Positions 34,870 to 54,012 of a stretch of DNA of 64,000 nucleotides are shown here, piece by piece. Both the position numbers and the translations under genes were made by a program. Below the pieces are notes generated by a model that was not told the origin of the DNA, made no database searches, and was given only the letters and a program-made list of their open reading frames with translations. Positions within the stretch are counted from its first letter, which is position 1, and the number at the start of each line of letters is the position of its first letter. Source of the stretch: Zygnema circumcarinatum SAG 698-1b (Eukaryota > Plantae > Zygnematophyceae); contig CM074807.1 of the NCBI GenBank assembly GCA_037447605.1, positions 2,304,327-2,368,326 of the forward strand, in the 5' to 3' direction.

Positions 34870-36352
34870 TCATGTTGTGAATGGCAGCTGTAAGTAAACC
34901 TGTGGCCAAAAAACGGCCTCACTGAAAACACCTCTCATGATGATGGGATGTGCTAAGTGGCTGTTAGCCATGGCTGCGGTTTGTCTCACCCTCGGCCTCA
35001 GCCAGGTGGAGAGGGGATTGTGAGGAGATTCACGCTCAAGTAAAACCTGCACTGTGAAGCAAGCAATGTGCATCTGAGGTTCTTTTCCTCGGTCACTCTA
35101 TGCCGTCTTCTTAGGATGACCTTACAGTCACTTGTGCTGTTGCCGTGTGTTGTTTTGCCTCGGTCAAAACTGAAGGCGTAAAGCTCGATGGCCGGGGGAG
35201 GGGTTGTGTGATTAGTCAAGCGCCTGCCGGTCTTTCATCGTCTGATTCAACCTTCCTGTGTTTTGCACACTATGATACGTATTATCACCTTCATGCGCAA
35301 AAGCTGTTAAATGCAGTAAGCCGCACATTGGAGGCGGAAGGGGTCAAAACTGAAACCAGTGATATTGCTTCACTCATACTGGCAAGGCTTCCAAAACTCG
35401 AGCCTCGTGGACAAAAGTAGACAATTAACCAGCCGACTTCAGTGTCCCAGTGTTTGGCTTTTGATTGGCCCATGGTTCACGCAACGGTGCGGAAGTTCTT
35501 CCCCAGTTCTTGCCCTGGGGAGAACTTCTGCACCGTTGCTCTTATCAGGTAGAAGTGTACACCTTCCATTGTCGCAGGGCATTTCATATCTCTATTATTC
35601 ACACTCAGCCAAGAAAACCATCGGATTTGAATTGCGCGAGTCTTTCCATCTCGACCGTTGTTCTCAGTGCACAACACCGACTGCTCGTCGACGTTTGGAA
35701 ACTCAGGTGAACCCCTTCACCACGACCACTGAACCTTTCAGCTTGGTGTCACAATGAACCAAGGAAAGCCCAGTGAGTACAGACTCAGTGCCACCACACC
35801 ATAGACCTAAATGAAAGCAAAATCACCCTGATCCGCAGAGATTCCACTGCCTCTGTATAGTCAATAGGCGCGATACTCCACTGCGAACAAAACTTCAATG
35901 CAGGGCGCAGACAAGGAAACAAGCGGCTCAAAGCATACCTTGATCGCGCTCCTCCCAAGAATTTCAGCAGTCCCGAGCTTCCGACATCAGAAACATCGCC
36001 CTCAGAAGCACAAATCTGAACGCTGGAGCGCCTACTCAACGGGAACAAGGTCAGCGCAAGCAGCCATGGGATTGCTGCCGGTTTGGGCTGAGGATCCACA
36101 CACGCTACACGGGTCCACCAGAGTTGAACATTTCCAAAGTGGACCCACATCCACCTCCTTAACTACCCCTGAACTCGAGCTGTCCGCGTGGCGCCACGCC
36201 CGCGACCGGCGGAGCAGCTCGCGTCGCGACGTGGGCCCTGCGGCCCCACCGCGCGGCGATGCCGCACCCGAGGAGGAGATGACGCGGGATGCCTCTCCAA
36301 ACCCGACAGAGTACTCCTCCCAGACGTCCTCCATACCTTTTTCATTTCTCAT
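34870..36352 (-). CDS. Candidate unrecognised spliced gene, divergent from LHCBM
   Basis: Several AG/GT-bounded segments join in compatible phases (MRNEKGMEDVWEEYSVGFG...SSSG|ICASEGDVSDVGSSGLLKFLGGARS|SGVSRLLTIQRQWNLCGSG|... and VLLERESPHNPLSTWLRPR|VYLQLPFTT*). The middle could not be closed and no homolog was recognised. Confidence 0.25.
35481..35539 (+). other. 59-nt near-perfect hairpin
   Basis: GCAACGGTGCGGAAGTTCTTCCCCAG - TTCTTGCC loop - CTGGGGAGAACTTCTGCACCGTTGC: 25-bp stem with one bulge and one G:U pair. Confidence 0.8.
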
Positions 36353-36419
36353 TCCGTTATCAGAGTACCGATTCCTGGAATACTCCGCCGCCCTGTCCGG
36401 AGCCCCCTCATCCCGTGCC

Positions 36420-36790
36420 CACGTGCCGCGCTCTCCAAAGCAAAGTCCACATCCAACGGGGATACGCGCGTGCCACATGGCGACTCCTCATTGGCCATCT
36501 CCTGCCCAGAAATTCCGTTTGGCCGGTTTGGGTCCCGACCCGTTCCCACCTCCTCCTTGCCCGTCGGCCCGCTCCCGGCCACGTGCCGGCCGGCGGGGCG
36601 GCCGTCCGTACGGGGCGCCATCCGGGGCAGGGGCGCTGGCGATCGCCAAAATCGGCGCGGGCCAATGCGCGGGCGCGGGGGCCGCCGCGCTGCGGATTAC
36701 GCCCCGCCCGCGTGGCGCCACGGGCAGCCGCGCGGGCACCCGGAAATTAGGCGGATGGCCTGCCAAAAGGGGAAGTGGGCCAATGGCGGG
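36420..36790. promoter_or_regulatory. GC-rich LHCBM upstream region with G-boxes and CCAAT boxes
   Basis: CACGTG at 36420-36425 and 36580-36585, and GGCCAATG at about 36660 and 36779. G-box and CCAAT motifs are typical of light-regulated Lhc promoters. Confidence 0.4.
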
Positions 36791-37018
36791 CAGGGGTTTG
36801 GCTGCCCGTGGCGAGGAAAGTTTTTGGGATGGGAGAAAGGGAGATATTTTGGTAGATCGAGGGGAGTTTTGTCTGCCCGCGGGCAGCGCGGGGCGAGATG
36901 GCGGGCGGGCGGGCGGCAGGCGCAGCGCCGCGCGGTTCAAATAGCGGCGAGCGTTGCAAGGTTAGCGCCCTACCCAGAAGCCTTCTACCTTCTACCTGCA
37001 AACATCTCCTCAGCAGCT

Positions 37019-37965
37019 ATGGCCGCCATCGTCGCTGCCTCCGCTGTGCTCCCCTCCACCTTCGCTGGCTCAGTCGTTGAGCTCAGCAAGGCCGTCGGCA
37101 ATGCCGAGGCCCGCGTCACCATGAGGAAGGCCGTCGCCAAGAAGTCCAGTGACTCCATCTGGTACGTTTTTCTCTGACTCTGCACTTTTGAAGGCACTTT
37201 CTGCTTCCTTCCTGCTTCCAGCTTGCCCTTCGGCCTCTCTGCAGCCTCTTCTGAGGTCTGCCAGCACTCGCTGAACGCGCCGCTGAGAATGCTGGCTCCT
37301 GCCAACTTTGCAGGTATGGCGCTGACCGCCCCAAGTTCTTGGGCCCTTTCTCCGGAGAGGCCCCCTCTTACCTCACCGGTGAGTTCCCCGGTGACTACGG
37401 CTGGGACACCGCCGGTCTCTCATCTGACCCCGAGACCTTCGCTAAGAACCGCGAGCTGGAGGTGATCCACGCCCGCTGGGCCATGCTCGGTGCCCTCGGC
37501 TGCCTCACCCCCGAGCTCCTCGCCAAGAGCGGCGTGAAGTTCGGAGAGGCCGTCTGGTTCAAGGCTGGCGCCCAGATCTTCTCTGAGGGCGGCCTTGACT
37601 ACCTCGGCAACCCCTCCCTCATCCACGCCCAGAGCATCCTTGCCATCCTCGGAACGCAGGTTGTGCTCATGGGAGCCATTGAGGGCTACCGTGTTGCCGG
37701 TGGACCCCTCGGAGAGGTCACCGACCCCCTGTACCCCGGAGGCAGCTTCGACCCCCTGGGTCTGGCTGACGACCCCGAGACCTTCGCTGAGTTGAAGGTG
37801 AAGGAAATCAAGAACGGACGTCTCGCCATGTTCTCCATGTTCGGATTCTTCGTCCAGGCCATCGTCACCGGCAAGGGCCCCCTCGAGAACTTGGATGACC
37901 ACCTTGCTGACCCCGCTGTGAACAACGCCTGGGCCTACGCCCAGAGCTTCGTGCCCGGAGTCTAG
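37019..37965 (+). CDS. LHCBM: Major LHCII chlorophyll a/b-binding protein
   Basis: Exon 37019-37161 plus exon 37314-37965: [64 protein letters not shown]. Strong C/G-ending codon bias. Confidence 0.98.
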
Positions 37966-39327
37966 GTTTTCTCGTTGTAGAATGTACAGAAAATTATGCA
38001 AAAACGGTCAGAAGGAGATTTGAGCGGCAGTGGAAGACGGTATTCTGTACCTTAAACATGATGGTTAACCATTATGAGTTGTGCACCAAAGTTTAGTTTT
38101 TCAGTATATTCATCTTTCTCTCATCTTCCTGTTCTTATATCATGGCTTTCGTGGCTGCCTGACCAACTTAACTGATAATTTATGCTGCTTAAATTGTCTT
38201 CATGTTTCCTGGCTTGTTTTGTGTTGAGAGAGAGGTAGACACTTAGAATATATTTTGGCAAGATACGTGATTTTTTTTCAATTTTTTTACGATTCTCATT
38301 CACATAACAGTTTCGTTCTTATATTCTTATCAATCACTACTTTGATGAGTACTTTGTATCCTCCAATTAATGCATGCAAATGTGAATGTTTGCTAATGAC
38401 CCTGTCTTTGCGGACGTCGTCTTCAACTACCGAGAAAAAAAACATAGATACATCGATGTTATGTGTCATTGTCATCCTCCAGTCACGCCACACATTCTTC
38501 CCAGATGATTTGATACAGCAGGGCTGAATAGACGAAGCCAGCTCGGTGAAATAGAGCGGTGAATGGTTGTTGTCGAAAACATCGAGTATATCTCGAATAT
38601 CATTACACTGATTACCTCCGTCGTTTAACATTTCTCAGAATCCAAAGAAAAGAAGAAGAGAAGTCTGCATCAGCAGCTCGATAGTTATTAAAAAGGCCGT
38701 TCTTCAACACATCTCACTGACGAGACGTTGGGGAACTCTAGCAATGACCCGTCACATCAGCAGCCTTATCTTTCATCATGCAAACAATCATCATGATTGA
38801 ATTGAAGCAGCCACGTCTCAGTTAAATGCCCGTAAACCTCTGAACGCAGCGAAACGGAAGAGCTCTCACTGTCTTCGCAGAGCTTAAAGTGCAACCTGCC
38901 ACGCCGGTGACAGGCAATTCGAATGGACAACAGATCACGGGATTGTAACTATTACCAGGCGCTCCATCAGCACTCACATCCACCTGACAAGGAGAAAGCT
39001 AGCATATCTGAAAAGGGGTCCATAAGAATAGCCTGCCAAGATAAGGCTAAAAGTATCTCCTTATTCTGATTACTTGGACCCTTTATACCCTGTACATTGA
39101 GTACTCACAGCGCCTCTTTCAATCTTGCAATTGCTGTAACAGTACTCAAATGATGAAACCCACTTTACACGAACAAAACTTGAAAAAGCCAACCTGTACT
39201 TGGTTTAGTCAAGGCCATGTTAGTGGCATGGCCACGTACAGCATGGAAGGAAAAGTGAAGGGTTTCAGTACGCGTAAGCAGGCTCTATTGGAGGCAGGCC
39301 AGGCCTATCGGCGACTCCCTCCATCCA

Positions 39328-41339
39328 TTATTGTACAACCACTTTGAGGATTTTTACTGGCTCGATTGGCTTGTCTTGCGGTCCAGTAGAGACACTCTCT
39401 ATCTCCTGTCAATGAATAGCATCCACGAGCATTAGACTCCAGTTTATGCTGAACACTTTCAAGTGGATTTATTCGAAAACCAGAAATGATTGACAAGACA
39501 GTTCACAGAACAAATCGAGATTAAAATAGTATAATAACGTCAAAATATACCATATACACCCTCGAGAGAGCGTTTGAGTTACGGCTGCTGTAGGTTGTGG
39601 TTCACATATTGCCATTACGAAGAAGCAGATGGTTGACTGGCCAGGGGTCCACTTACACGAACCACTTTGTGGCCTTCAGTGACACGTCCAAAAACTGTGT
39701 GCTTCCCATCCAGCCAGTGAGTGGCCACCGTGGTGATGAAGAACTGCGAACCGTTCGTGTCCGGACCACTGTTGGCCATTGCAAGGGTGAAGGGCTCATG
39801 TTTAAGTCTGCAAAAAAACACAGTTGGATGTTCAATGGCTGCCATGAATTGGAACGTGCACTGCAATGAATCCTGCAGAGTGTTGCAATGTGTCCGCCAT
39901 CCACTTTCAAACCCACAGTCGCCACCACCGTCAACTCACAATCACCAATAAGCCTTCATAAGTCTGAAGGACGTTTGAACAGGTAGTTTCACACGGGAAA
40001 TTGCTACCGACTATCTGCCATCAGCTGAAAGAGCAAAAAGTATTCGTACTCTGGTCGTATTTCATCAGCGAACTCATGTCCCCAAATTGACTGCCCCCCT
40101 GTGCCATCGCCTCTGGGATCACCTCCTTGAATCATGAAGTCTTTGATTACCCTGTGAAATGTCAAACCATCGTAGTAACCTTTTTTGCTGCAGCAACATA
40201 CACAATTCTTATCAATCCAAAAAATATCTACAACTACAGCCAGAACTTACTTGAGAGAGAGTTACTCGATCCATGCAGTGTTGGCCTCTTACAACAACAC
40301 AATCATTAATTCTAGTCACAAATTTCTCGGCAAATCACTACAGGCTTTTCAATCATAGCTCCTCGCAACAAAAATCTTGGAACAGCAAGTTCACATTACC
40401 TGTGTGTTACAAAATTCTCGACAGTTTTAGGACACTCCTCCGGATATAACTCCAAATGAATGTCTCCCTTTGTAGTTTGCAATAGCTGCGGCCAGTTCGT
40501 GGTAGTGAATAATCGCAAGGTTGGTAAATGCAGCATTGCTGTGTTGACCAGACATAACTACTTAACACTGCCCTAGCAGTCGTAAAGTGCCCGAATTAAA
40601 TTGTCAAATCTGTGCCTTCGTGATGTACGAGACGTGAAAGATAGAATGGATTTCAAGTGCTTGGAACTCGAAACGGAGGGTAATGAGCGTACCACTCGGG
40701 AAGCCACTGAGGAGTTATTGCCCGTAGTCTCTACTTCCGAACTATCATTTACTTTATTGCTTTTGAATGATTGAAGGTTATTAAAAGCCTGCAGCCATGC
40801 TACCAATCAACGGCCCTCTTTTAAGCAACTGTAAAAACACATGGCGCAATATCAACCAATGGGCACCCACCTCTATCGCAGCTAAGGTTAGGTTTTTATA
40901 AACCCCAAACACGCAACGTTTTGGAAGATTTACAACAGGTTCAAACTTGATCAGCTTCAGCTTACCGGCATGCTGAGCGCACTCCTGCATTTCCACAAAA
41001 TCAGCGGACCCCAATCTACTGTTCAGCGAGTACCTTGGCACGTTTCGGCAGAAATAAAAAGAAACAGCAGATCAAATGCAAAGACTAAATTTTCTTTATT
41101 CTGACTGCAGGCTTGAACGATTCTTTTTAAGCTCTAACGCAGCAATGAAGAAGCTCCTGCACATTGAGCTGCAGAACACATTCGATGCCCATAACTCACC
41201 GCTTCCGGAAGTAGAATAGCACAAGAAGCAAGACAGCTGTCAACAACACGCAGGTCCCGATTGCTGCAATATTCGTCTTCCTGACGCCCTTCTTTCGTTT
41301 GGAGTGTTGCAAGAGGGCGGCCGGCTTCATCCGCGCCAT
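39328..41339 (-). CDS. Type-II membrane-anchored cyclophilin, CYP21-4-like N-terminus with a canonical PPIase domain
   Basis: Exon 1 [47 protein letters not shown] resembles Arabidopsis CYP21-4 (MAKIKPQALLQQSKKKKG...TM, recalled). The PPIase exons read [29 protein letters not shown]|[24 protein letters not shown]...DEIRPE|[26 protein letters not shown]...[12 protein letters not shown]...VVR|EIESV...KVVVQ*. Linker exons are less certain. Confidence 0.85.
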
Positions 41340-41879
41340 GGCTCCTGCTACGGTGACAGCAAAATGCCTGCAGATCTCCAAGGCCTGCCCGCCCGCCCTC
41401 TCCCCCACCCTTGCAGGCCCCCTCCCCTCCCTCCCGGCCTGCGCTCCCTTCCCGTTTGAATCCGCCGCCTGCCTGCGCAGCCTCTTTGCTTTTTTGCTGT
41501 CCGTACGGTACGGAGAGAGGCTACAGACTACAGTACAGTACGGCAGCAGGGCCTTAACCAGAACAGTACGGACAGTGAATGGTTCGAGCAGGGTTAACTT
41601 GTAGGAGATTTTTGTGAATGGAACCGTTACACTGCGGGAGAGCTTAATGGCAGACTGGTTGACCGTTTGTTCAGGTTGTACATGGAACTTGTAGATGGCA
41701 CATAGTGTGCCAAAACCTTGGCGTCCATCTTTGTCGAGCTCTCTAAAAAGTTGCATTTGTTCCTTGCTATGGATAGAAGGGGACAGCTTCTGGAGCGCAG
41801 GTCCCTTTCGACACAATGACACAGGTGTCCCTCACCGCGCTGGCAGCAGGCAGGCACAGTCAGTAAGTTGTGTGGAAGC

Positions 41880-42190
41880 TGACAGAGCTTCAAACCACTT
41901 CATTCACGCATTGACGTATGGACACTTCCACATCAAAGTAGCAGATTCAACCAAGACTTCATCAACACCACATACCACACAGCGCTTTACTATCCACGAC
42001 ATGTCACCACCACAGCACTGGAACCACAGAAGATGCCAAGACAGCGCACTTAGATAAGCTTTTGCTTCAAAGTGGGAAATCCAGCAGGATCTTCTGCTTT
42101 GCTCCTCGAGACCCTGAAGGAAAGTCGTCCAATATTTAAGGATAGAAGCTCTGTCAGGCCAAATCCATTCCCTCCTACTGGAACACATAC
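41880..42190 (-). mobile_element. Possible decayed non-LTR retrotransposon fragment (zf-RVT-like)
   Basis: LSWHLLW...CVVCGVDEVLVESATLMWKCPYVNA*MKWF resembles the L1-clade C-terminal W...CxxC...ExxxHhhxxCP...W pattern, but the His is missing and there is a stop. Confidence 0.3.
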
Positions 42191-43027
42191 ATAATCCTCA
42201 GAGCCTGGATTGACACCACTCACACTAATACCATAAACAAGCGCAAAACATACAAGTTAGAGCGCCTTGGTCCACGCGCTTCTGAGAAGTTGCCTTCTCC
42301 GCAACACGCACAGTTTGCTGCTGCGTATTCCTAAGTTCTAGTCCGCTTGCATCGGCAAGCTCCTGCAGCTGCCAAGCATTATGTCGGTTTCAGCGTCCTA
42401 GCCCGCCACAAGTCCTGCACGCTTACAATCATCGGATTAATAAAGGTGCAGATGCATCTCCAACACCAAGGGATTGTCTGAAGGACACAGAACGCACACA
42501 TCACAAATACGAACTTCAGAAGGACAACCTTCTAGAAGGCATGAGCCCTACAGAGGAATGGAAATTAAATAAAGCTCTCAGAAGGAGTTTCAAACCGGAA
42601 CAAACAGCTAGAAATGCTTCATAAAAAGCCCTTGCACAGGCATTCCAGCACATGCACATTCAAACAATTCAGCGTTCACTGCTCTTATTTCTACCTATCA
42701 GTTTGATGGCGCGAGCAAGAAAAAATGCTAAATTTATCACTGGGGGCGAGCACCACTTGAGGGCACACAAGTCTTGCCACTTGACTTTCATTGGCCTTCG
42801 AGAAGCAGTATTATATTGACACTTCAGGTGATCGGCCCTGTGTTCATGATTGGCCAAGCATGAAAGCATTGACCCTTTCCAAATACATAATCCCACTCAA
42901 ACTCCACGCCGTTCAAATTTTTTCGTTAGTCCTCAAAATGTTGAGTTTAAAAAAAATAAAGACAGTAGAACTTGGTGGCAGCAGAGGAGCGTGACCGACC
43001 AATCAGCTGCTAATGCTGACATTTACC

Positions 43028-47332
<4,305 letters not shown>

Positions 47333-47760
47333 TTCTCTTCCTATCCCTCCCCGTCTGCAGCGAGCAGCAACAGCAGGCTCCTGCTGTTCTCCCTTCCGGA
47401 GGTCCAAAACCAAAGGGTATCCCTTGGAGCAGACTCTCAGGGGCTGGCTCCGCACCGCGCGGCTGCATAGAACACCATTATTCGTCTTCAGTTAGCCGTG
47501 GAAACGCTGACAGTTGTAAACTGAACCGCATAGAACTTCAGCTAATGCACTTGATACTCGGCAAAGCCGTACGTCCGTACATGTGAAATTCCAGTAAAAC
47601 TACAAGCAGGGGAGTTTCCGACGGCTTCCCGTAACGGAATCCGAATTTGCTCGCTACGGATTACTACGGATTGGAATTGCGCAGGATCAGAACCGGTAGC
47701 CAGCTCTGGAATCCGGAACGGCGTAAAAAAGGCTTCTGTACGACCACCGTTACATGACGG

Positions 47761-47883
47761 CTGTTAGGGTTTGTCGAGCTTTCAGGAACAGGAGCGCAGG
47801 GGAGGCCAGTTCGAGCCTGGTTGGCTGATGAGCCATGCGCGGATGATTTTAGGGTTTGGATTAGGGTTAGGGCAGGGTTAAGG
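47761..47883 (+). promoter_or_regulatory. Degenerate telo-box cluster / G4 motif upstream of CYP71
   Basis: TTAGGGTTT at about 47764 and TTTTAGGGTTTGGATTAGGGTTAGGGCAGGG at about 47847-47877. Confidence 0.5.
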
Positions 47884-48001
47884 CAGCGTGAACATTAGGG
47901 TCTGCGGGTGCTGGTCAGAATGATTTGACGTGATCTGGTTGCATGCTCTCGGTAGCAATCTCAGGAGCTGCATTACAACTGTCGTAAGGGAGAGCAGGAG
48001 G

Positions 48002-51000
48002 ATGGGAGCGACAGACGAGGGCGCTGGCAAGGTAGAGTTGCTGGACTCGAGAAAGAGAGAGAGAGATGGAGAGGATGGTGGCCCGCCAGAAGGGGGCGTC
48101 GAAGGTGACGACCCGAATCTTATGGTGGGACCAACCCCTCCAAAGCTGAAGAAGAAAAAAAAGCTCGAGTTTGAGCAGGTTTACTTGGAGGCTCTTCCTT
48201 CTGCAGAGATGTAAGTTTTTCCTCACGACGAAAGAAATTTGAGAGTGGTAAGCTAAGTTACATATTTTTCTCGGAAAACCAAATTTATTGAGAAGGTCAT
48301 ATTTTTGTTTTTTGCATTGTTTACTTCCTTTTGTTTCAAGAATCGACATTAATGAACGTGCGATACTCCATTTGCTTCAGAATTTGTCTTTCATTGGCTT
48401 GTTTTACAGCTGTGAATGCCTGAAGGTAGGCTTGGCACTTGATGCAGGTATGAGAAGAGCTACATGCACCGAGATTGGGTCACCCATGTGGCAGTGACCG
48501 AAACAGACTTCTTCATTACAGGCAGCAGAGACGGTTAGTGTCCTTTCTCGTCTGAACCCTAACCCCCCGGAACACTTCTGGTTGTCAACTAAGGGCTTGA
48601 AGGTTCCCGAATAGTTCAGTTGAAGCATAGAACTAGATTCAAGGATATTTTCGCCCATGATGATTGAATGCACAATGTTAAGAAACAAAAAGACTCTCGT
48701 ATGCAGATACATAGCCAGAAACTAAACTTGAGTTGTCTTGCCCGATTATGTCACGGTCTTGTATAACAATTGCCTTAGTTTGAGGCAGGAAGCAAGCGCT
48801 ACTATTATGACACAATCATGCTCCCGGAATGTCAAAAAAATCCAACTCTCATGCTTACAGAGATTTAACCTTGTGCATTGCCAGGCCATCTTAAGTTCTG
48901 GAAAAAGAGACCTGTTGGAGTAGAGTTTGTGAAACATTTTCGAGCGCACATTGGACCCATCCAAGACTTATCAGTAAGTCATCTATCAAGGAGTGTTGTC
49001 ACCTTCTTTGTTTTAGTGTGTTCCTCTCTTTTGCGACCTACGTGTATGGAGTTTCAAGAGTCACTTTCTAAAATCTAAAACAAAACAAGTTATTGGTTGT
49101 CGGATTTTGTGAACCTTAAGCTTGAGCGGGGTAAGCAAACATGATTCATGATTCGACTGTCATCAAGTTAAGTCTTCAGCTGGCCGCTTGTCATTTTTGA
49201 GGCATATAAATCACTTGGGACTTAAGAATTTGAATCAATGCATATCCGAGAAGTGCGTATTTTCATGGCGTGCTTTTTTCATTGTTGAATGTAACAATGA
49301 TTTGAAGAAGGTTTCTCGACAGAGACTGACGGCGTTTTTGGGTGCTTTACAACTTTTAATTCGAGGATTCTTGTTGAAGAGTACCATGAGATTAATTCGG
49401 ACCGTGCATCGGGCGGGAGATTTCACTTGTCATTGATAAAGCAGGAGCATTGTCTCACGGAAATTGTTGCTGGTGACATCCGTGCAGGTCAGCGCTGATG
49501 GGTCTCTCTGTTGCACCGTATCTTCTGATATGGCAGCTAAAGTGTATGACGTGGTCAATTTTGACATGATGGTGATGTTGCGCCTCCGTTACAATCCGTC
49601 TGCGGTCGAGTGGATATTCCAGCAGAATGATGCGAAAGCAACCCTGGCCATTGCTGAGAAGGACTCGCCCAAAATTCATATCTACGATGCCCGATCTGGT
49701 CAAGATCAACCGCTAAGGACAGTGGAGGTATGTCCTTGCCAGCCTGGTACCTTGTTCTCTAAAGCCCTCAGCTATAACCATGAGCTCATGATGCTATAGT
49801 GTATTTCTCTACTTTCATGCATCATTCGTTTCTTTCGTTTTATCATTTCTAGTCTCCAAACTCCCGTATTATCCAAGCTAGCTAGTTTTTCGGTTGACGG
49901 GTACTGTATAGTCGGGCACGCAGAAGCACAGTGGGAGGGCTTCCACATTTTTCTATCTGAATCTGTATTATTTGACTTTTCTGAGTTCTTTATTGGATTG
50001 GTTTTGGAGTTTGGGAGTTTACCCTACTCCTTCCTTAGGCATAGTGACTTTGTCCGATAGAAGACGTGTGAGTGGTGATGGTGTGGCTGCGCATTGAACA
50101 GTGACTACCCCTTCAAGTCTGTCCCTAGTTGCCTACCTTTTGGTGAAGGTAGTGAGAGTGACAAGCAAGATCAAGGTTCTCAGTGAACCACGAAAGGTTG
50201 CTAGGCTAAGTCCCTGTGCTTTTTGTCTCCATTGCCCACAATATCCCTATAAGGGTGGTTGCTCTTTATGTGTAATATACGACATTCGACTTTGTGGTTG
50301 TGACAGGTCCACAGAGCTCCTGTGAGTGTCATGAAGTATTGTCCGCAAATGGATATGGTGATATCAGTCGACTGTAAGGGCCTCTTGGAGTATTGGAGTG
50401 CTGTAACTTTTGCTTTGCCTTCAGATAGGTGAGTCTCACTTTAGCTTTATTTCTGACATTTCAGCAAGCAAGAATAGAAGAAGATGTTTACTTGGAGGAA
50501 GCATCAGTACTTGATATCATTACCAGATAGTGCATTGTCAGCAATCACAAAACAAGAGCAACAAATTCACTGTTCTTTTTGCGGAAACGGCATTCTTGGC
50601 TTGGGCAATAGAGCATGCGTTTTTAGAATTTGCCAATCCTAAACGGAGCATGCACGATATAGCTTGTTCCAGGTCTGTTCTTCAACGCAGTAGCTCGACT
50701 TACGACCTTTTACTTCGACGTTGCCACCGTGTTTCCTAATCTCATGTCAGAAAGTCGCTACTGTTTGCACATCCTAGAAGTGCAGCTGCTCTTTGCAATT
50801 ACAAAGCAGAGAGTGGAAGCTTGCTATTCTGCCATCATATTTTACTCTGCTTTAGTTATGGGGAAGCTTGGAAGAAAAAACTATTCCCTCCAACACTCTT
50901 GAGAAATCGGAAGATACACAGCAAGAGAAATCACGAGCTAGAGCATGCAGACGGCGTGCTAGTTCAAAGGCTTATGTATGTTCATGTACAGATTTGTGCA

Positions 51001-54000
51001 TGGTCGTGTATGAAGCAAGCGATTAGTTCCTGTGATGTCTTCTGTAATCTGCAATGTCTGTGTGTAGCTTGTTTGGTCTATTAATTAGTAAGGGCAGTTA
51101 TGGATACAACCTAGGGCAACAAATCTTCGACCACAAAAACTGAAGTGAGAAGAATTCTAGGTTGGATGGTACAGGATAGGTGTTAGCTGCATGGTACATT
51201 CACTACTCTGAAAGGCTGTCCTTAACCAGAGGTGGGAAGCCTTTTTGTTGTGCAGGTTGAAGTTTCAGTTCAAGACTGAGACTGATTTGTATGCACTTGC
51301 GAAGGCAAAGACTATTGCTACATCTCTGCAGGTTGGACTTGACTCTTTTGTTCGCCCGCATGCCAAACATTGTTGAAACTTATAATTCTGTTGGCTTACA
51401 TAAGCATATGCCTCGCGATTCCTTCTGCCATATGGCCACTTTGGGAAGCGGAAGCTCAATTGATGATTTACACCTTGCTGGTGTGCTGATACTACCTACA
51501 TGGCTCGGTGCAGATCAGCCCTGATGGAAAGCAGTTTGCAACCGTCTCTCCAGATAAAAGAATTCGTGTATTTTGGGTTGAAACTGGGAAGCTTCGTAGA
51601 ACATACGATGAATCATTGGAGGTATGGATCGTTTTTTTAGCCCCTGGGCAGTGATGTATGGCAGCTTACGTTGGGTATTTTCTCTGTCCGTCTCTTTTCC
51701 TTTATTGTCTTTCTTTGTAGAATCTTGATGCCTGTCCAATGCTGAGATACGACCATGTTGGAATACTATCGTATGGTAGCATATGCCCGATCTGTGTATC
51801 GTTCTTGTGTCTTGTATGGTGTTATGACCAGCGGGCTGTTCTCCTGGGCTGTATAGGCTGCTCAAGAGCTTCAGCGTAGTGATGCTGAAATGTACCGCTT
51901 GGAGGCTATCGACTTTGGGCGCCGTTTGGCTATTGAGCGTGAAATCGATAAAACAGAGGATGTCCCATCTCCGAATGCCGTTTTTGATCAAAGCGGGAAC
52001 TTTCTCCTGTACCCGACACTTTTGGGAATCAAGGTGGGCCTTTCCCATACTCCACTTCTATGCCAGATCATGATATTTTGCTGATCATGTCTTTCAATTT
52101 CCATTATTGTTTGGGGCATGTTGGAGTGTCCAATAGCAATAGCAGTGGAGCCCAGGGACCCTGCCTATGCTGATGTGGGTTGTGGACAGGCTGTGGCCGG
52201 CCTCCCTCCATGCAGGTGGTGAATTTGTACACTAATCGTGTTGCGCGTATTATTGGAAAAGTAGAAAATACGGAACGGTTCCTTCGGATAGCCCTCCATC
52301 AAGGAGGGCTGGGCAAGACCAAGAAAATGGCCGCACTTGCAAACTCGCAGGACCAAAAAGCGCCCCTTACAGACCCCACTGTGCTTGCCTGCGCCTTCAA
52401 GAAACATCGTCTCTTCCTTTTTAGGTGTGTTTCTATATTTTTCGGGGTCTTACTCGTGACGCACCCGCCACTCAAGCTTATCTTCATGTCAATTTTTTTA
52501 AATCATCATATACAAAGCCACGTCTTATAGAGTTTGCTTCATGTGTGGCACTTGATGTTGACACCAAAGGACGATTTTGAATGTTGCATCTGTCCCCAAC
52601 ATCAAGCGCCGACTTTCGAGCTCTGAAGAACTGTGTGTCGGTGGATTGTAGATGTCATTGGCAGTACATTGAAGCGTTGTGCTAACCAGTTGGCCGCAAC
52701 TGCAGTGAAAATAGCTTACGCCGCTTGCATTACAGTCTCCTTACAGTCTTCCTCCTTGTCCCTTTTGTAGTCGGAGAGAACCGGAAGAAGGGGAGGATGC
52801 TTCTTCAGGAAGAGACGTATTCAATGAAAAGCCGCCGCCTGAAGAGCTGATGGCTCTTGCAGATGTGGTCAGAACCGCCGCCTCTTCATTGCCAGACAAT
52901 GTGGTAAGCACTCACTGTTTCTTACTTTGTACATCGTGTCGTTCCGCCTTGCTTGCCACCACTTCAAATCTTATAAGTGAACCTTCTGTTACACTTGTAG
53001 CAGCGAAAGGGGGGCTGCTGCCATCTAGGAGGCAGGTGTTATCAGTTGGTTTAGGCACATTTGACTGCTGATTTTGCTGGTCGGGTTGTGCTGTTGGTGG
53101 CTATTGAGTTGTCTCCGTCTAATTACGGTGTGGGCTGGTGCAGATACTCCATACATCACTGGGAGACTTACACGTAAAACTATATCCAGAAGAATGCCCA
53201 AGGACTGTCGAAAATTTTACAACTCATTGTCGAAATGGTTATTACGATAACCTCATCTTTCACCGTGTGATCAAAGGATTCATGGTGCAGACTGGTGATC
53301 CTCTTGGCGATGGCACAGGAGGACAATCCATTTGGGGCGGAGAGTTTGAAGATGAATTCCACAAAAGGTATGACCTTAAGGGTGAAGCATTAAGTCTAGC
53401 ATTTTGTGAACGATTTCGTTATGGCAATCATGCGCAAGTTCTAAATGCTATTTTAGTTATCAGTACGAAGTCATGCTCCGTTGTGATAGGTAGACCCGCA
53501 TGACTAAATTTCCTTTGCCATTGACGCCAAAACTGCAAACCCATTTTTGCAGTTTGAGGCACGATCGTCCATTCACTGTTTCCATGGCGAATGCGGGACC
53601 CAACTCCAACGGTGCACAGTTCTTCATCACCACGGTTGCAACGCCATGGCTGGACAACAAGCATACGGTCTTCGGGCGTGTCACAAAAGGAATGGACGTA
53701 GTGCAGGTAAGTCGTTGAGAGTGGTCTCTGAAAACTCGTGTCTCAAAAACTCTGCAAGCACCTTCCCGTACGTTTTTTTTTTGTGTTGAAATCACGGTAA
53801 AGCAGGTGAGGTAATGGGTGGGACTCGGCTTTCGCAATTCATGAGAGGGCTTCAACGTACCACTTTTGCCTTTGCCTGATGAGAATCAGCTTTTTTCTGA
53901 TGGTGATTTTTATGTGATCTTTCAGGCCATTGAGAAAGTGAAGGTCGATCGGAGCGACAAGCCTTATCAAGACATCAAGATAACAAGCGTGACAATCCCT

Positions 54001-54012
54001 AAACATAAGTAG
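48002..54012 (+). CDS. CYP71: WD40-repeat cyclophilin (CYP71 / PPWD1 ortholog)
   Basis: [20 protein letters not shown]|[77 protein letters not shown], then the PPIase domain [53 protein letters not shown]...DKPYQDIKI. Confidence 0.96.

Follow-up and report, generated by a model that had tools for sequence, protein, structure and literature searches.

Here, we have analysed a window of 64,000 nucleotides (nt) from the zygnematophyte alga Zygnema circumcarinatum SAG 698-1b (contig CM074807.1, positions 2,304,327 to 2,368,326; positions below are those of the window), and we show that a minus-strand gene at 39328-41339, termed gene A, is a true CYP21-4 ortholog with an intact active site. Work on CYP21-4 in rice, Arabidopsis and potato has dealt with a Golgi protein that brings better stress tolerance and yield, yet has no isomerase activity. 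The overall explanation that we favour, with a probability of about 0.7, is that gene A encodes an anchored luminal cyclophilin whose PPIase (peptidyl-prolyl cis-trans isomerase) domain was derived from the WD40-cyclophilin CYP71 by an ancient partial duplication, and that the catalytic site decayed later in the family. A CYP71 gene, termed gene B, is located in the same window, in inverted orientation and 6.6-13 kilobases (kb) from gene A. An earlier note on this DNA had suggested that gene A derives from a duplicated CYP71 3' end and may be an intermediate; neither a local duplication nor a singular intermediate is supported below. Its broader suggestion, that a CYP71 domain was fused to a membrane anchor and that activity was lost afterwards, is plausible and fits the nearest-family relation, the three shared introns and the exon lengths.

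Gene A encodes a basic tail, one transmembrane (TM) helix, a Ser/Asn-rich linker of ~40 residues and a cyclophilin domain that makes up the last ~150 residues. Database searches were made with single exons of gene A or with its natural ortholog P0001 (233 residues) as queries, and the joined 235-residue model of gene A was used only in local alignments and trees. With P0001 as the query, full-length relatives of 50-60% identity were found in Mesotaenium endlicherianum, Closterium, Sphagnum, Riccia, Ceratodon, Selaginella and Diphasiastrum. Alignment of 16 family members showed that the N-terminal motif, the helix, a variable linker and the domain are common to all those relatives. In gene A the motif, KPxALLQxSKxKKG followed directly by the single TM helix, is found within residues 1-44. 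When the first 50 residues of a moss member were searched against 5.8 billion sequences, CYP21-4 of Herrania umbratica (P0272; E = 1.5e-6) and, with E likewise ~1e-6, a Theobroma protein were retrieved. The resemblance of the tail and helix to CYP21-4, pointed out in the earlier note, is borne out by this shared motif.

The gene structure is conserved as well. By mapping annotated proteins to their own genomic loci with an exact spliced matcher, we obtained exon sizes of 146/34/48/86/138/151/87 nt for the Selaginella ortholog, 152/52/69/86/138/151/87 nt for that of Sphagnum and 152/40/51/86/138/151/84 nt for Herrania CYP21-4, to be compared with 140/19/96/86/138/151/78 nt for gene A. The intron phases are 2, 0, 0, 2, 2, 0 in all four genes. 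Since the sizes of the domain exons are shared and the phases are identical, the orthology between gene A and angiosperm CYP21-4 is firm. A phase 2 intron after FVTH, the fourth intron in the domain of gene A, does exist as the earlier note described, but it is not private to this gene: all five CYP21-4 genes examined have it. The exon sizes of the orthologs show that this intron is a family character and that the 19-nt exon of gene A has counterparts. In an LG+C20 tree of 70 domains, the 18 CYP21-4 members with an intact site form one group (support 98/92), in which gene A pairs with P0001, near Mesotaenium and another sequence. FastTree places the degenerate members, subject to a long-branch caveat, within the land-plant part of CYP21-4.

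Several further observations concern individual family members. The Closterium ortholog has lost the phase 2 intron before LKH, leaving an exon of 289 nt (138+151; L004:11686-11974), and its annotated model adds a first exon of 7 nt. Its neighbour (L004:13269-19660) is annotated as a 1424-residue product in which WD40 families occur together with a retrotransposon SH3_Tf2-1 match, and it has no cyclophilin domain. In Selaginella moellendorffii, the ortholog P0006 carries the NCBI name 'peptidyl-prolyl cis-trans isomerase-like 1', an automatic PPIL1-like label that is misleading. This locus also has a second, truncated model, P0049. P0059, from a Logan contig of 988 nt, joins an N-terminal half of CYP21-4 type to a CypA-like C-terminal half (GGDFT..., ...ADCGQL) and is probably a chimeric transcript assembly.

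Residues 1-23 of the gene A protein include 8 Lys/Arg and are followed by a hydrophobic stretch at 24-42 with a peak Kyte-Doolittle value of 2.8, giving 8 positive charges before the helix and 3 just after it. In rice, OsCYP21-4 is Golgi-resident and its residues 1-57 suffice for Golgi targeting (PMC4589654), in agreement with the Golgi association stated in the earlier note. The charge distribution of gene A, together with homology to the rice targeting segment, suggests a type II signal-anchor protein with the domain in the lumen of the Golgi or endoplasmic reticulum, and we infer a Golgi location from the homology of the tail and helix.

The domain itself is a cyclophilin-type PPIase (PF00160), with a profile match over its whole length and the catalytic Arg/Phe/Gln/His set. 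In CypA numbering, gene A is identical to CYP71 at H54, R55, F60, M61, Q63, A101, N102, Q111, F113, W121, L122 and H126, which include catalytic and cyclosporin-contact positions. The only mismatch among the positions checked is A103, which is Ser in gene A, and the canonical residues listed in the earlier note are all retained. Since the catalytic set is complete and the Trp that supports cyclosporin binding is present, we expect the domain to be a prolyl isomerase that is active, sensitive to cyclosporin and tethered at the membrane.

An intact site is found throughout most of the family. Published work shows that CYP21-4 homologs of monocots and dicots lack key PPIase residues, and that recombinant OsCYP21-4 had no activity on Suc-AAPF-pNA in vitro (PMC4589654). 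Gene A does not have these degenerate PPIase and cyclosporin-binding residues. Of the 28 database members tabulated beside gene A, the site is intact in 24, among them the named members from zygnematophytes, mosses, liverworts and lycophytes; these 24 and gene A keep H54, R55, F60, Q63, A101, N102, Q111, F113, L122 and H126. Only Herrania CYP21-4 and P0268-P0270 are degenerate, with most of these residues gone. The statement that land-plant CYP21-4 has a degenerate site holds for angiosperms, as reported (PMC4589654) and as seen in Herrania, but is too broad, given the intact members in mosses, liverworts and lycophytes. An intact site is the rule in all sampled members from outside the seed plants, and gene A is not special in this respect. 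We treat the degenerate site as a derived trait that does not define the family, and the ancestral form of the family, which remains widespread, has the look of a functional prolyl isomerase tethered to the membrane. A Trp at the W121 position, as in CYP71, is restricted to gene A, P0001 and Mesotaenium, the other members having His or Ile.

The nearest relatives of the domain outside the family are those of CYP71 and PPWD1. Single-exon searches of the PDB were too short to separate CYP71 from PPIL1 and were replaced by a search with full-length P0001. This search scored CYP71 (6lkb) highest at 230 bits, followed by PPWD1 (204 bits), a Plasmodium domain (2fu0; 195 bits), PPIL1-type cyclophilins (~168-174 bits), PPIL2 (146 bits) and CypB (143 bits). 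Similarly, among the best 150 matches of P0001 in 1.84 billion representatives, those aligned in a single stretch were, multi-domain proteins apart, mostly proteins of 550-770 residues with a C-terminal PPIase domain and 55-67% identity. In both searches the domain is nearest to CYP71/PPWD1 and not to another single-domain clade, an outcome that would have refuted the earlier note. Named members of the PPWD1-type clusters include angiosperm CYP71, Cyp9 of Schizosaccharomyces japonicus, and proteins of Candida, Cyclospora, Theileria, Gregarina and Strongyloides. As the PPWD1 type is pan-eukaryotic, occurring in fungi, apicomplexans, a nematode and plants, CYP71 is taken to be the older partner, and the direction from CYP71 to CYP21-4 would follow.

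The PPIase domains of genes A and B are identical at 96 of 150 positions (64%) with a single gap of one residue, close to the ~63% (96/152) counted by hand in the earlier note. Both contain LYPEECPxTVENF and one 11-residue string, which that note had also recorded. Three introns occupy the same position and phase in the two genes: phase 0 before L/I-L-x-T, phase 2 before L-K/R-H and phase 0 after VV-R/Q. The chance of such a three-fold coincidence is ~4/C(450,3) = 3e-7, for 4 and 3 introns in ~450 nt and with site preferences ignored. The terminal exons of CYP71 measure 224/154/81 nt in Neltuma and 224/154/87 nt in gene B, where 224 equals the 86+138 nt of CYP21-4 and 154 equals 151 plus one codon. 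The three positions pointed out in the earlier note are shared by the CYP21-4 and CYP71 genes compared, apart from the one lost in Closterium. Similarity between gene A and CYP71 continues for ~8 residues upstream of the first shared intron, and this intron was thus part of the copied segment rather than its boundary. The LPxxV/A motif in this upstream part was considered as a plant synapomorphy and rejected, as it also occurs in ~14 PPWD1-type representatives of several unrelated clusters. Outside plants, none of the three positions is found in the PPWD1 genes of Cyclospora (L011) and Theileria (L013), which were the only informative ones: the domain of the PPWD1-type gene of S. japonicus has no introns, and the metagenome-derived PPWD1-type genes P0165 and P0157 are intronless gene calls. 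The Cyclospora and Theileria genes instead have a phase 1 intron within the GDGTGG loop, before its last Gly.

To account for these observations, we argue that the CYP21-4 family would have arisen once, before zygnematophytes and land plants split. The simplest account and best model of its origin is a partial duplication at the DNA level, in which the 3' end of a CYP71/PPWD1 gene, with its three introns, would have been joined to exons encoding the anchor. The family would then have gained one intron and lost one codon, and the catalytic site would have decayed only later, in the lineage toward seed plants. In gene A, the short basic tail would remain cytosolic, the TM helix would act as the signal-anchor, and the linker and cyclophilin domain would be in the lumen of the secretory pathway, where secretory or Golgi-resident proteins that contain proline may be the substrates of this putative membrane-tethered prolyl isomerase. 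That gene A now lies 6.6-13 kb from CYP71 is not the result of a recent duplication. The duplication predates the split between zygnematophytes and embryophytes. Named members occur only in these two groups, and the absence of older members is weak evidence. Phylogenetic dating of the duplication failed, with a grade and long-branch warnings in FastTree, a polytomy in the LG+C20 tree and p = 0.43 in the approximately unbiased (AU) test.

Several points weigh against this account. In the domain tree, CYP21-4 does not fall inside plant CYP71, and the backbone is a polytomy. Constraining CYP21-4 with streptophyte CYP71 cost 5.2 log-likelihood units (p-AU 0.43), which allows a sister position that is neither shown nor rejected. 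The three introns could predate the CYP71 lineage, their positions having been compared in CYP21-4, CYP71 and a few PPWD1 genes. The degenerate P0268-P0270 carry no taxon, so that the node proposed for the loss of the site is approximate. The 19-nt exon 2 of gene A is inferred from sequence. Finally, two paralogs as close as these are unlikely to lie within 13 kb of each other by chance, and the account leaves this unexplained.

The alternative that survives best, though we consider it unlikely, is an older paralogy, in which CYP21-4 came from a free-standing PPWD1-like single-domain cyclophilin or from an ancestor that preceded the WD40 fusion, with the introns ancestral to a wider group. It would explain why the CYP21-4 clade joins the unresolved backbone and not the interior of plant CYP71, and single-domain relatives of 56-67% identity do exist. 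However, the named ones among these relatives are bacterial, the named CYP21-4 members come only from zygnematophytes and embryophytes, and the highest PDB score is that of a plant CYP71. Moreover, the three introns and the exon lengths are shared with streptophyte CYP71 and none of them with the two apicomplexan PPWD1 genes, and the AU test permits the sister position to streptophyte CYP71. The single-domain relatives deserve mention in their own right: P0050-P0120 comprise ~65 cyclophilins of 160-200 residues, 56-67% identical to the PPWD1/CYP71-type domain, which form one group beside or inside the PPWD1 radiation. P0099 is named 'bacterium' and P0115 Campylobacterales, which suggests a possible transfer of cyclophilins of this type between bacteria and eukaryotes.

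A second alternative accepts an ancient duplication and reads the proximity of genes A and B, with one V-ATPase subunit B gene between them, as the original neighbourhood, a relic that other lineages have lost. For a given pair of paralogs, a chance placement within ~13 kb would be improbable in a genome of hundreds of Mb, and the CYP71-like Trp at W121, lost in other members, is still present in gene A, P0001 and Mesotaenium. On the other hand, microsynteny seldom lasts over such time spans. In Closterium, Selaginella, Sphagnum and Herrania, the surroundings of the ortholog, searched to a distance of 10 kb, contain neither CYP71 nor V-ATPase B, and nothing like CYP21-4 was found near Neltuma CYP71. 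We give such a relic a small chance. The same low weight goes to the stronger proposal that this locus is the birthplace of the CYP21-4 family, which we regard as a long shot: the inverted pair would then be the footprint of partial duplication and exon shuffling in the common ancestor of zygnematophytes and land plants, and gene A would keep the ancestral, Trp-containing, cyclosporin-sensitive active enzyme. On the ancient partial duplication that we favour, the proximity to CYP71 is a matter of chance or a secondary state, or else a relic that this lineage alone has kept.

That the PPIase exons of gene A were copied recently from the neighbouring CYP71 by a local inverted duplication, so that we would be seeing the family being born, is very improbable. 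The two closest cyclophilin paralogs do lie 6.6-13 kb apart, inverted and with shared introns. The identities, however, speak against a copy: gene A is 64% identical to gene B and 67.5% identical to Neltuma CYP71, while gene B and Neltuma CYP71 are 88% identical to each other, and genes A and B do not form a group that leaves out the other CYP71s. Gene A also has the family-wide extra intron and codon deletion, and orthologs with the full architecture and the same exon sizes are found in zygnematophytes, bryophytes, lycophytes and angiosperms. Together with the lack of linkage within 10 kb in the four other genomes, these results contradict a local origin of gene A.

Equally improbable is an annotation artefact or a pseudogene, with the TM exon outside the PPIase transcript or the gene decaying: the model does require a 19-nt exon predicted from sequence, but it has an open frame with GT-AG sites at every intron and a fully conserved catalytic set, its seven-exon plan and phases are matched in four other genomes, and it is collinear with a transcript-derived ortholog. 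The elements listed in the earlier note are all present in the model, but two linker exons of 19 and 96 nt, which it had not spelled out, are needed to close the frame. Both are supported by the orthologs, in which the counterparts of exon 2 are also short (34-52 nt) and have the same phases, 2/0. PF00160 was matched separately by exons 4, 5 and 6 (E = 1.5e-6, 7.6e-12 and 2.1e-19). The ortholog, P0001, was the single protein found with exon 1 as the query, and it is 72% identical over the tail and helix. In this search exon 1 was embedded in a stop-free upstream reading and only residues 162-208 were scored, so that full-length candidates were admitted. P0001 matches PF00160 with E = 6e-55 and is encoded by an uninterrupted open reading frame (ORF) of 702 nt on contigs of 1.3-1.4 kb assembled from three sequencing runs. 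Since the orthologs are split into six or seven exons in each of the five genomes compared (that of this window included), these contigs are transcript-derived. The two proteins are collinear over all exon junctions, with identities of 33/46 in the tail and helix, 14/39 in the linker and 122/150 in the domain, or 72% over the full length and 81% over the domain. That this ortholog has a contiguous ORF on RNA-seq-type contigs is evidence in favour of the TM exon being spliced to the PPIase exons.

The window as a whole is eukaryotic and intron-rich, with a GC content of ~47%; positions 36001-38000 form a block of 64% GC, compared with 43-54% in the rest. Residues 53-620 of Neltuma alba CYP71 (P0137) align in order along 48449-54003, which identifies gene B as a complete WD40-cyclophilin gene of the CYP71/PPWD1 type, and gene B pairs with Neltuma CYP71 in the LG+C20 tree (100/97). 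The WD40 propeller with a C-terminal cyclophilin domain is present in gene B and absent from gene A, which has only the anchor and linker upstream of its domain. The features are listed below.

Table 1. Features of the window discussed in the text
Feature	Position	Strand	Remarks
Gene A, 7-exon CYP21-4 ortholog	39328-41339	minus	235 residues, frame closed
Gene A exon 1	41339-41200	minus	140 nt; ATG at 41339; ends in phase 2; basic tail with MxRxKPxALLQxSKxKKG motif and TM helix (residues ~24-44)
Gene A exon 2	40984-40966	minus	19-nt micro-exon, linker; predicted from GT-AG sites, closes the frame
Gene A exon 3	40788-40693	minus	96 nt; Ser/Asn-rich linker; ends in phase 0
Gene A exon 4	40485-40400	minus	86 nt; start of PPIase domain (LLQTTKGD...FVTH), then phase 2 intron of the CYP21-4 family
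Gene A exon 5	40187-40050	minus	138 nt; PPIase domain
Gene A exon 6	39807-39657	minus	151 nt; PPIase domain; best PDB match is the CYP71 PPIase domain 6lkb
Gene A exon 7	39405-39328	minus	78 nt: 75 nt and TAA stop at 39330-39328
V-ATPase subunit B-like gene (by its peptides)	~44800-47300	minus	multi-exon; ATP-synt_ab (PF00006) matches; between genes A and B, head-to-head with CYP71
Gene B, full-length CYP71/PPWD1 ortholog (WD40 part and C-terminal PPIase)	47930-54012	plus	5' limit approximate; alignment to Neltuma CYP71, ORFs
Gene B PPIase exon 1	53144-53367	plus	224 nt; equals gene A exons 4+5 (86+138)
Gene B PPIase exon 2	53553-53706	plus	154 nt; equals gene A exon 6 and one codon
Gene B last exon	53926-54012	plus	87 nt: 84 nt and TAG stop

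Gene A adds a new algal member to a known family, and the insight that it brings is a modest one at the level of family evolution, not a new kind of system. In the published view, CYP21-4 is confined to certain land plants (PMC4589654); our results extend the family to zygnematophytes, the algae closest to land plants. As the ancestral, widespread form looks active, the CYP21-4 proteins of crops would be pseudo-enzymes that decayed later. Overexpression of the inactive angiosperm proteins raises the content of mannosidic glycoproteins (PMC5517489), which suggests a part in the handling of glycoproteins, one that ceased to depend on catalysis at a later stage. The family provides a natural series of active and inactive members for asking what the Golgi function requires, and would illustrate neatly how partial gene duplication can move a domain together with its intact introns. 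Our literature search found no paper describing an origin of CYP21-4 from CYP71.

Comparison with known cyclophilins places gene A closest to the CYP21-4/CYP21-3 proteins of angiosperms. As seen in Herrania P0272, these share with gene A the M-G/A-R-x-K-P-x-A-L-L-Q-x-S-K-x-K-K-G motif and the TM helix. Angiosperm CYP21-4 also resembles gene A in its length of ~235 residues, in its seven exons with domain exons of 86/138/151 nt and phases 2, 0, 0, 2, 2, 0, and in the one-codon deletion in LKHE-PF/AF. It differs in having lost the equivalents of H54/R55, A101/N102, Q111, W121 and H126, all of which gene A keeps. PPIL1-type cyclophilins likewise have just one cyclophilin domain, which is about as large as that of gene A and has a short GDGTGG loop, but they have no N-terminal anchor and score clearly below CYP71/PPWD1. 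The PPIase domain of CYP71/PPWD1 (6lkb, 2a2n and gene B) is the nearest to that of gene A, with 64-68% identity and an identical catalytic set that includes the W121 equivalent. However, CYP71/PPWD1 proteins have a WD40 propeller, in place of which gene A has a membrane anchor and linker, and gene A has one more intron and one codon fewer. AtCYP71 has been described as interacting with histone H3 and chromatin (PMC9727951), whereas gene A would be expected in the secretory pathway.

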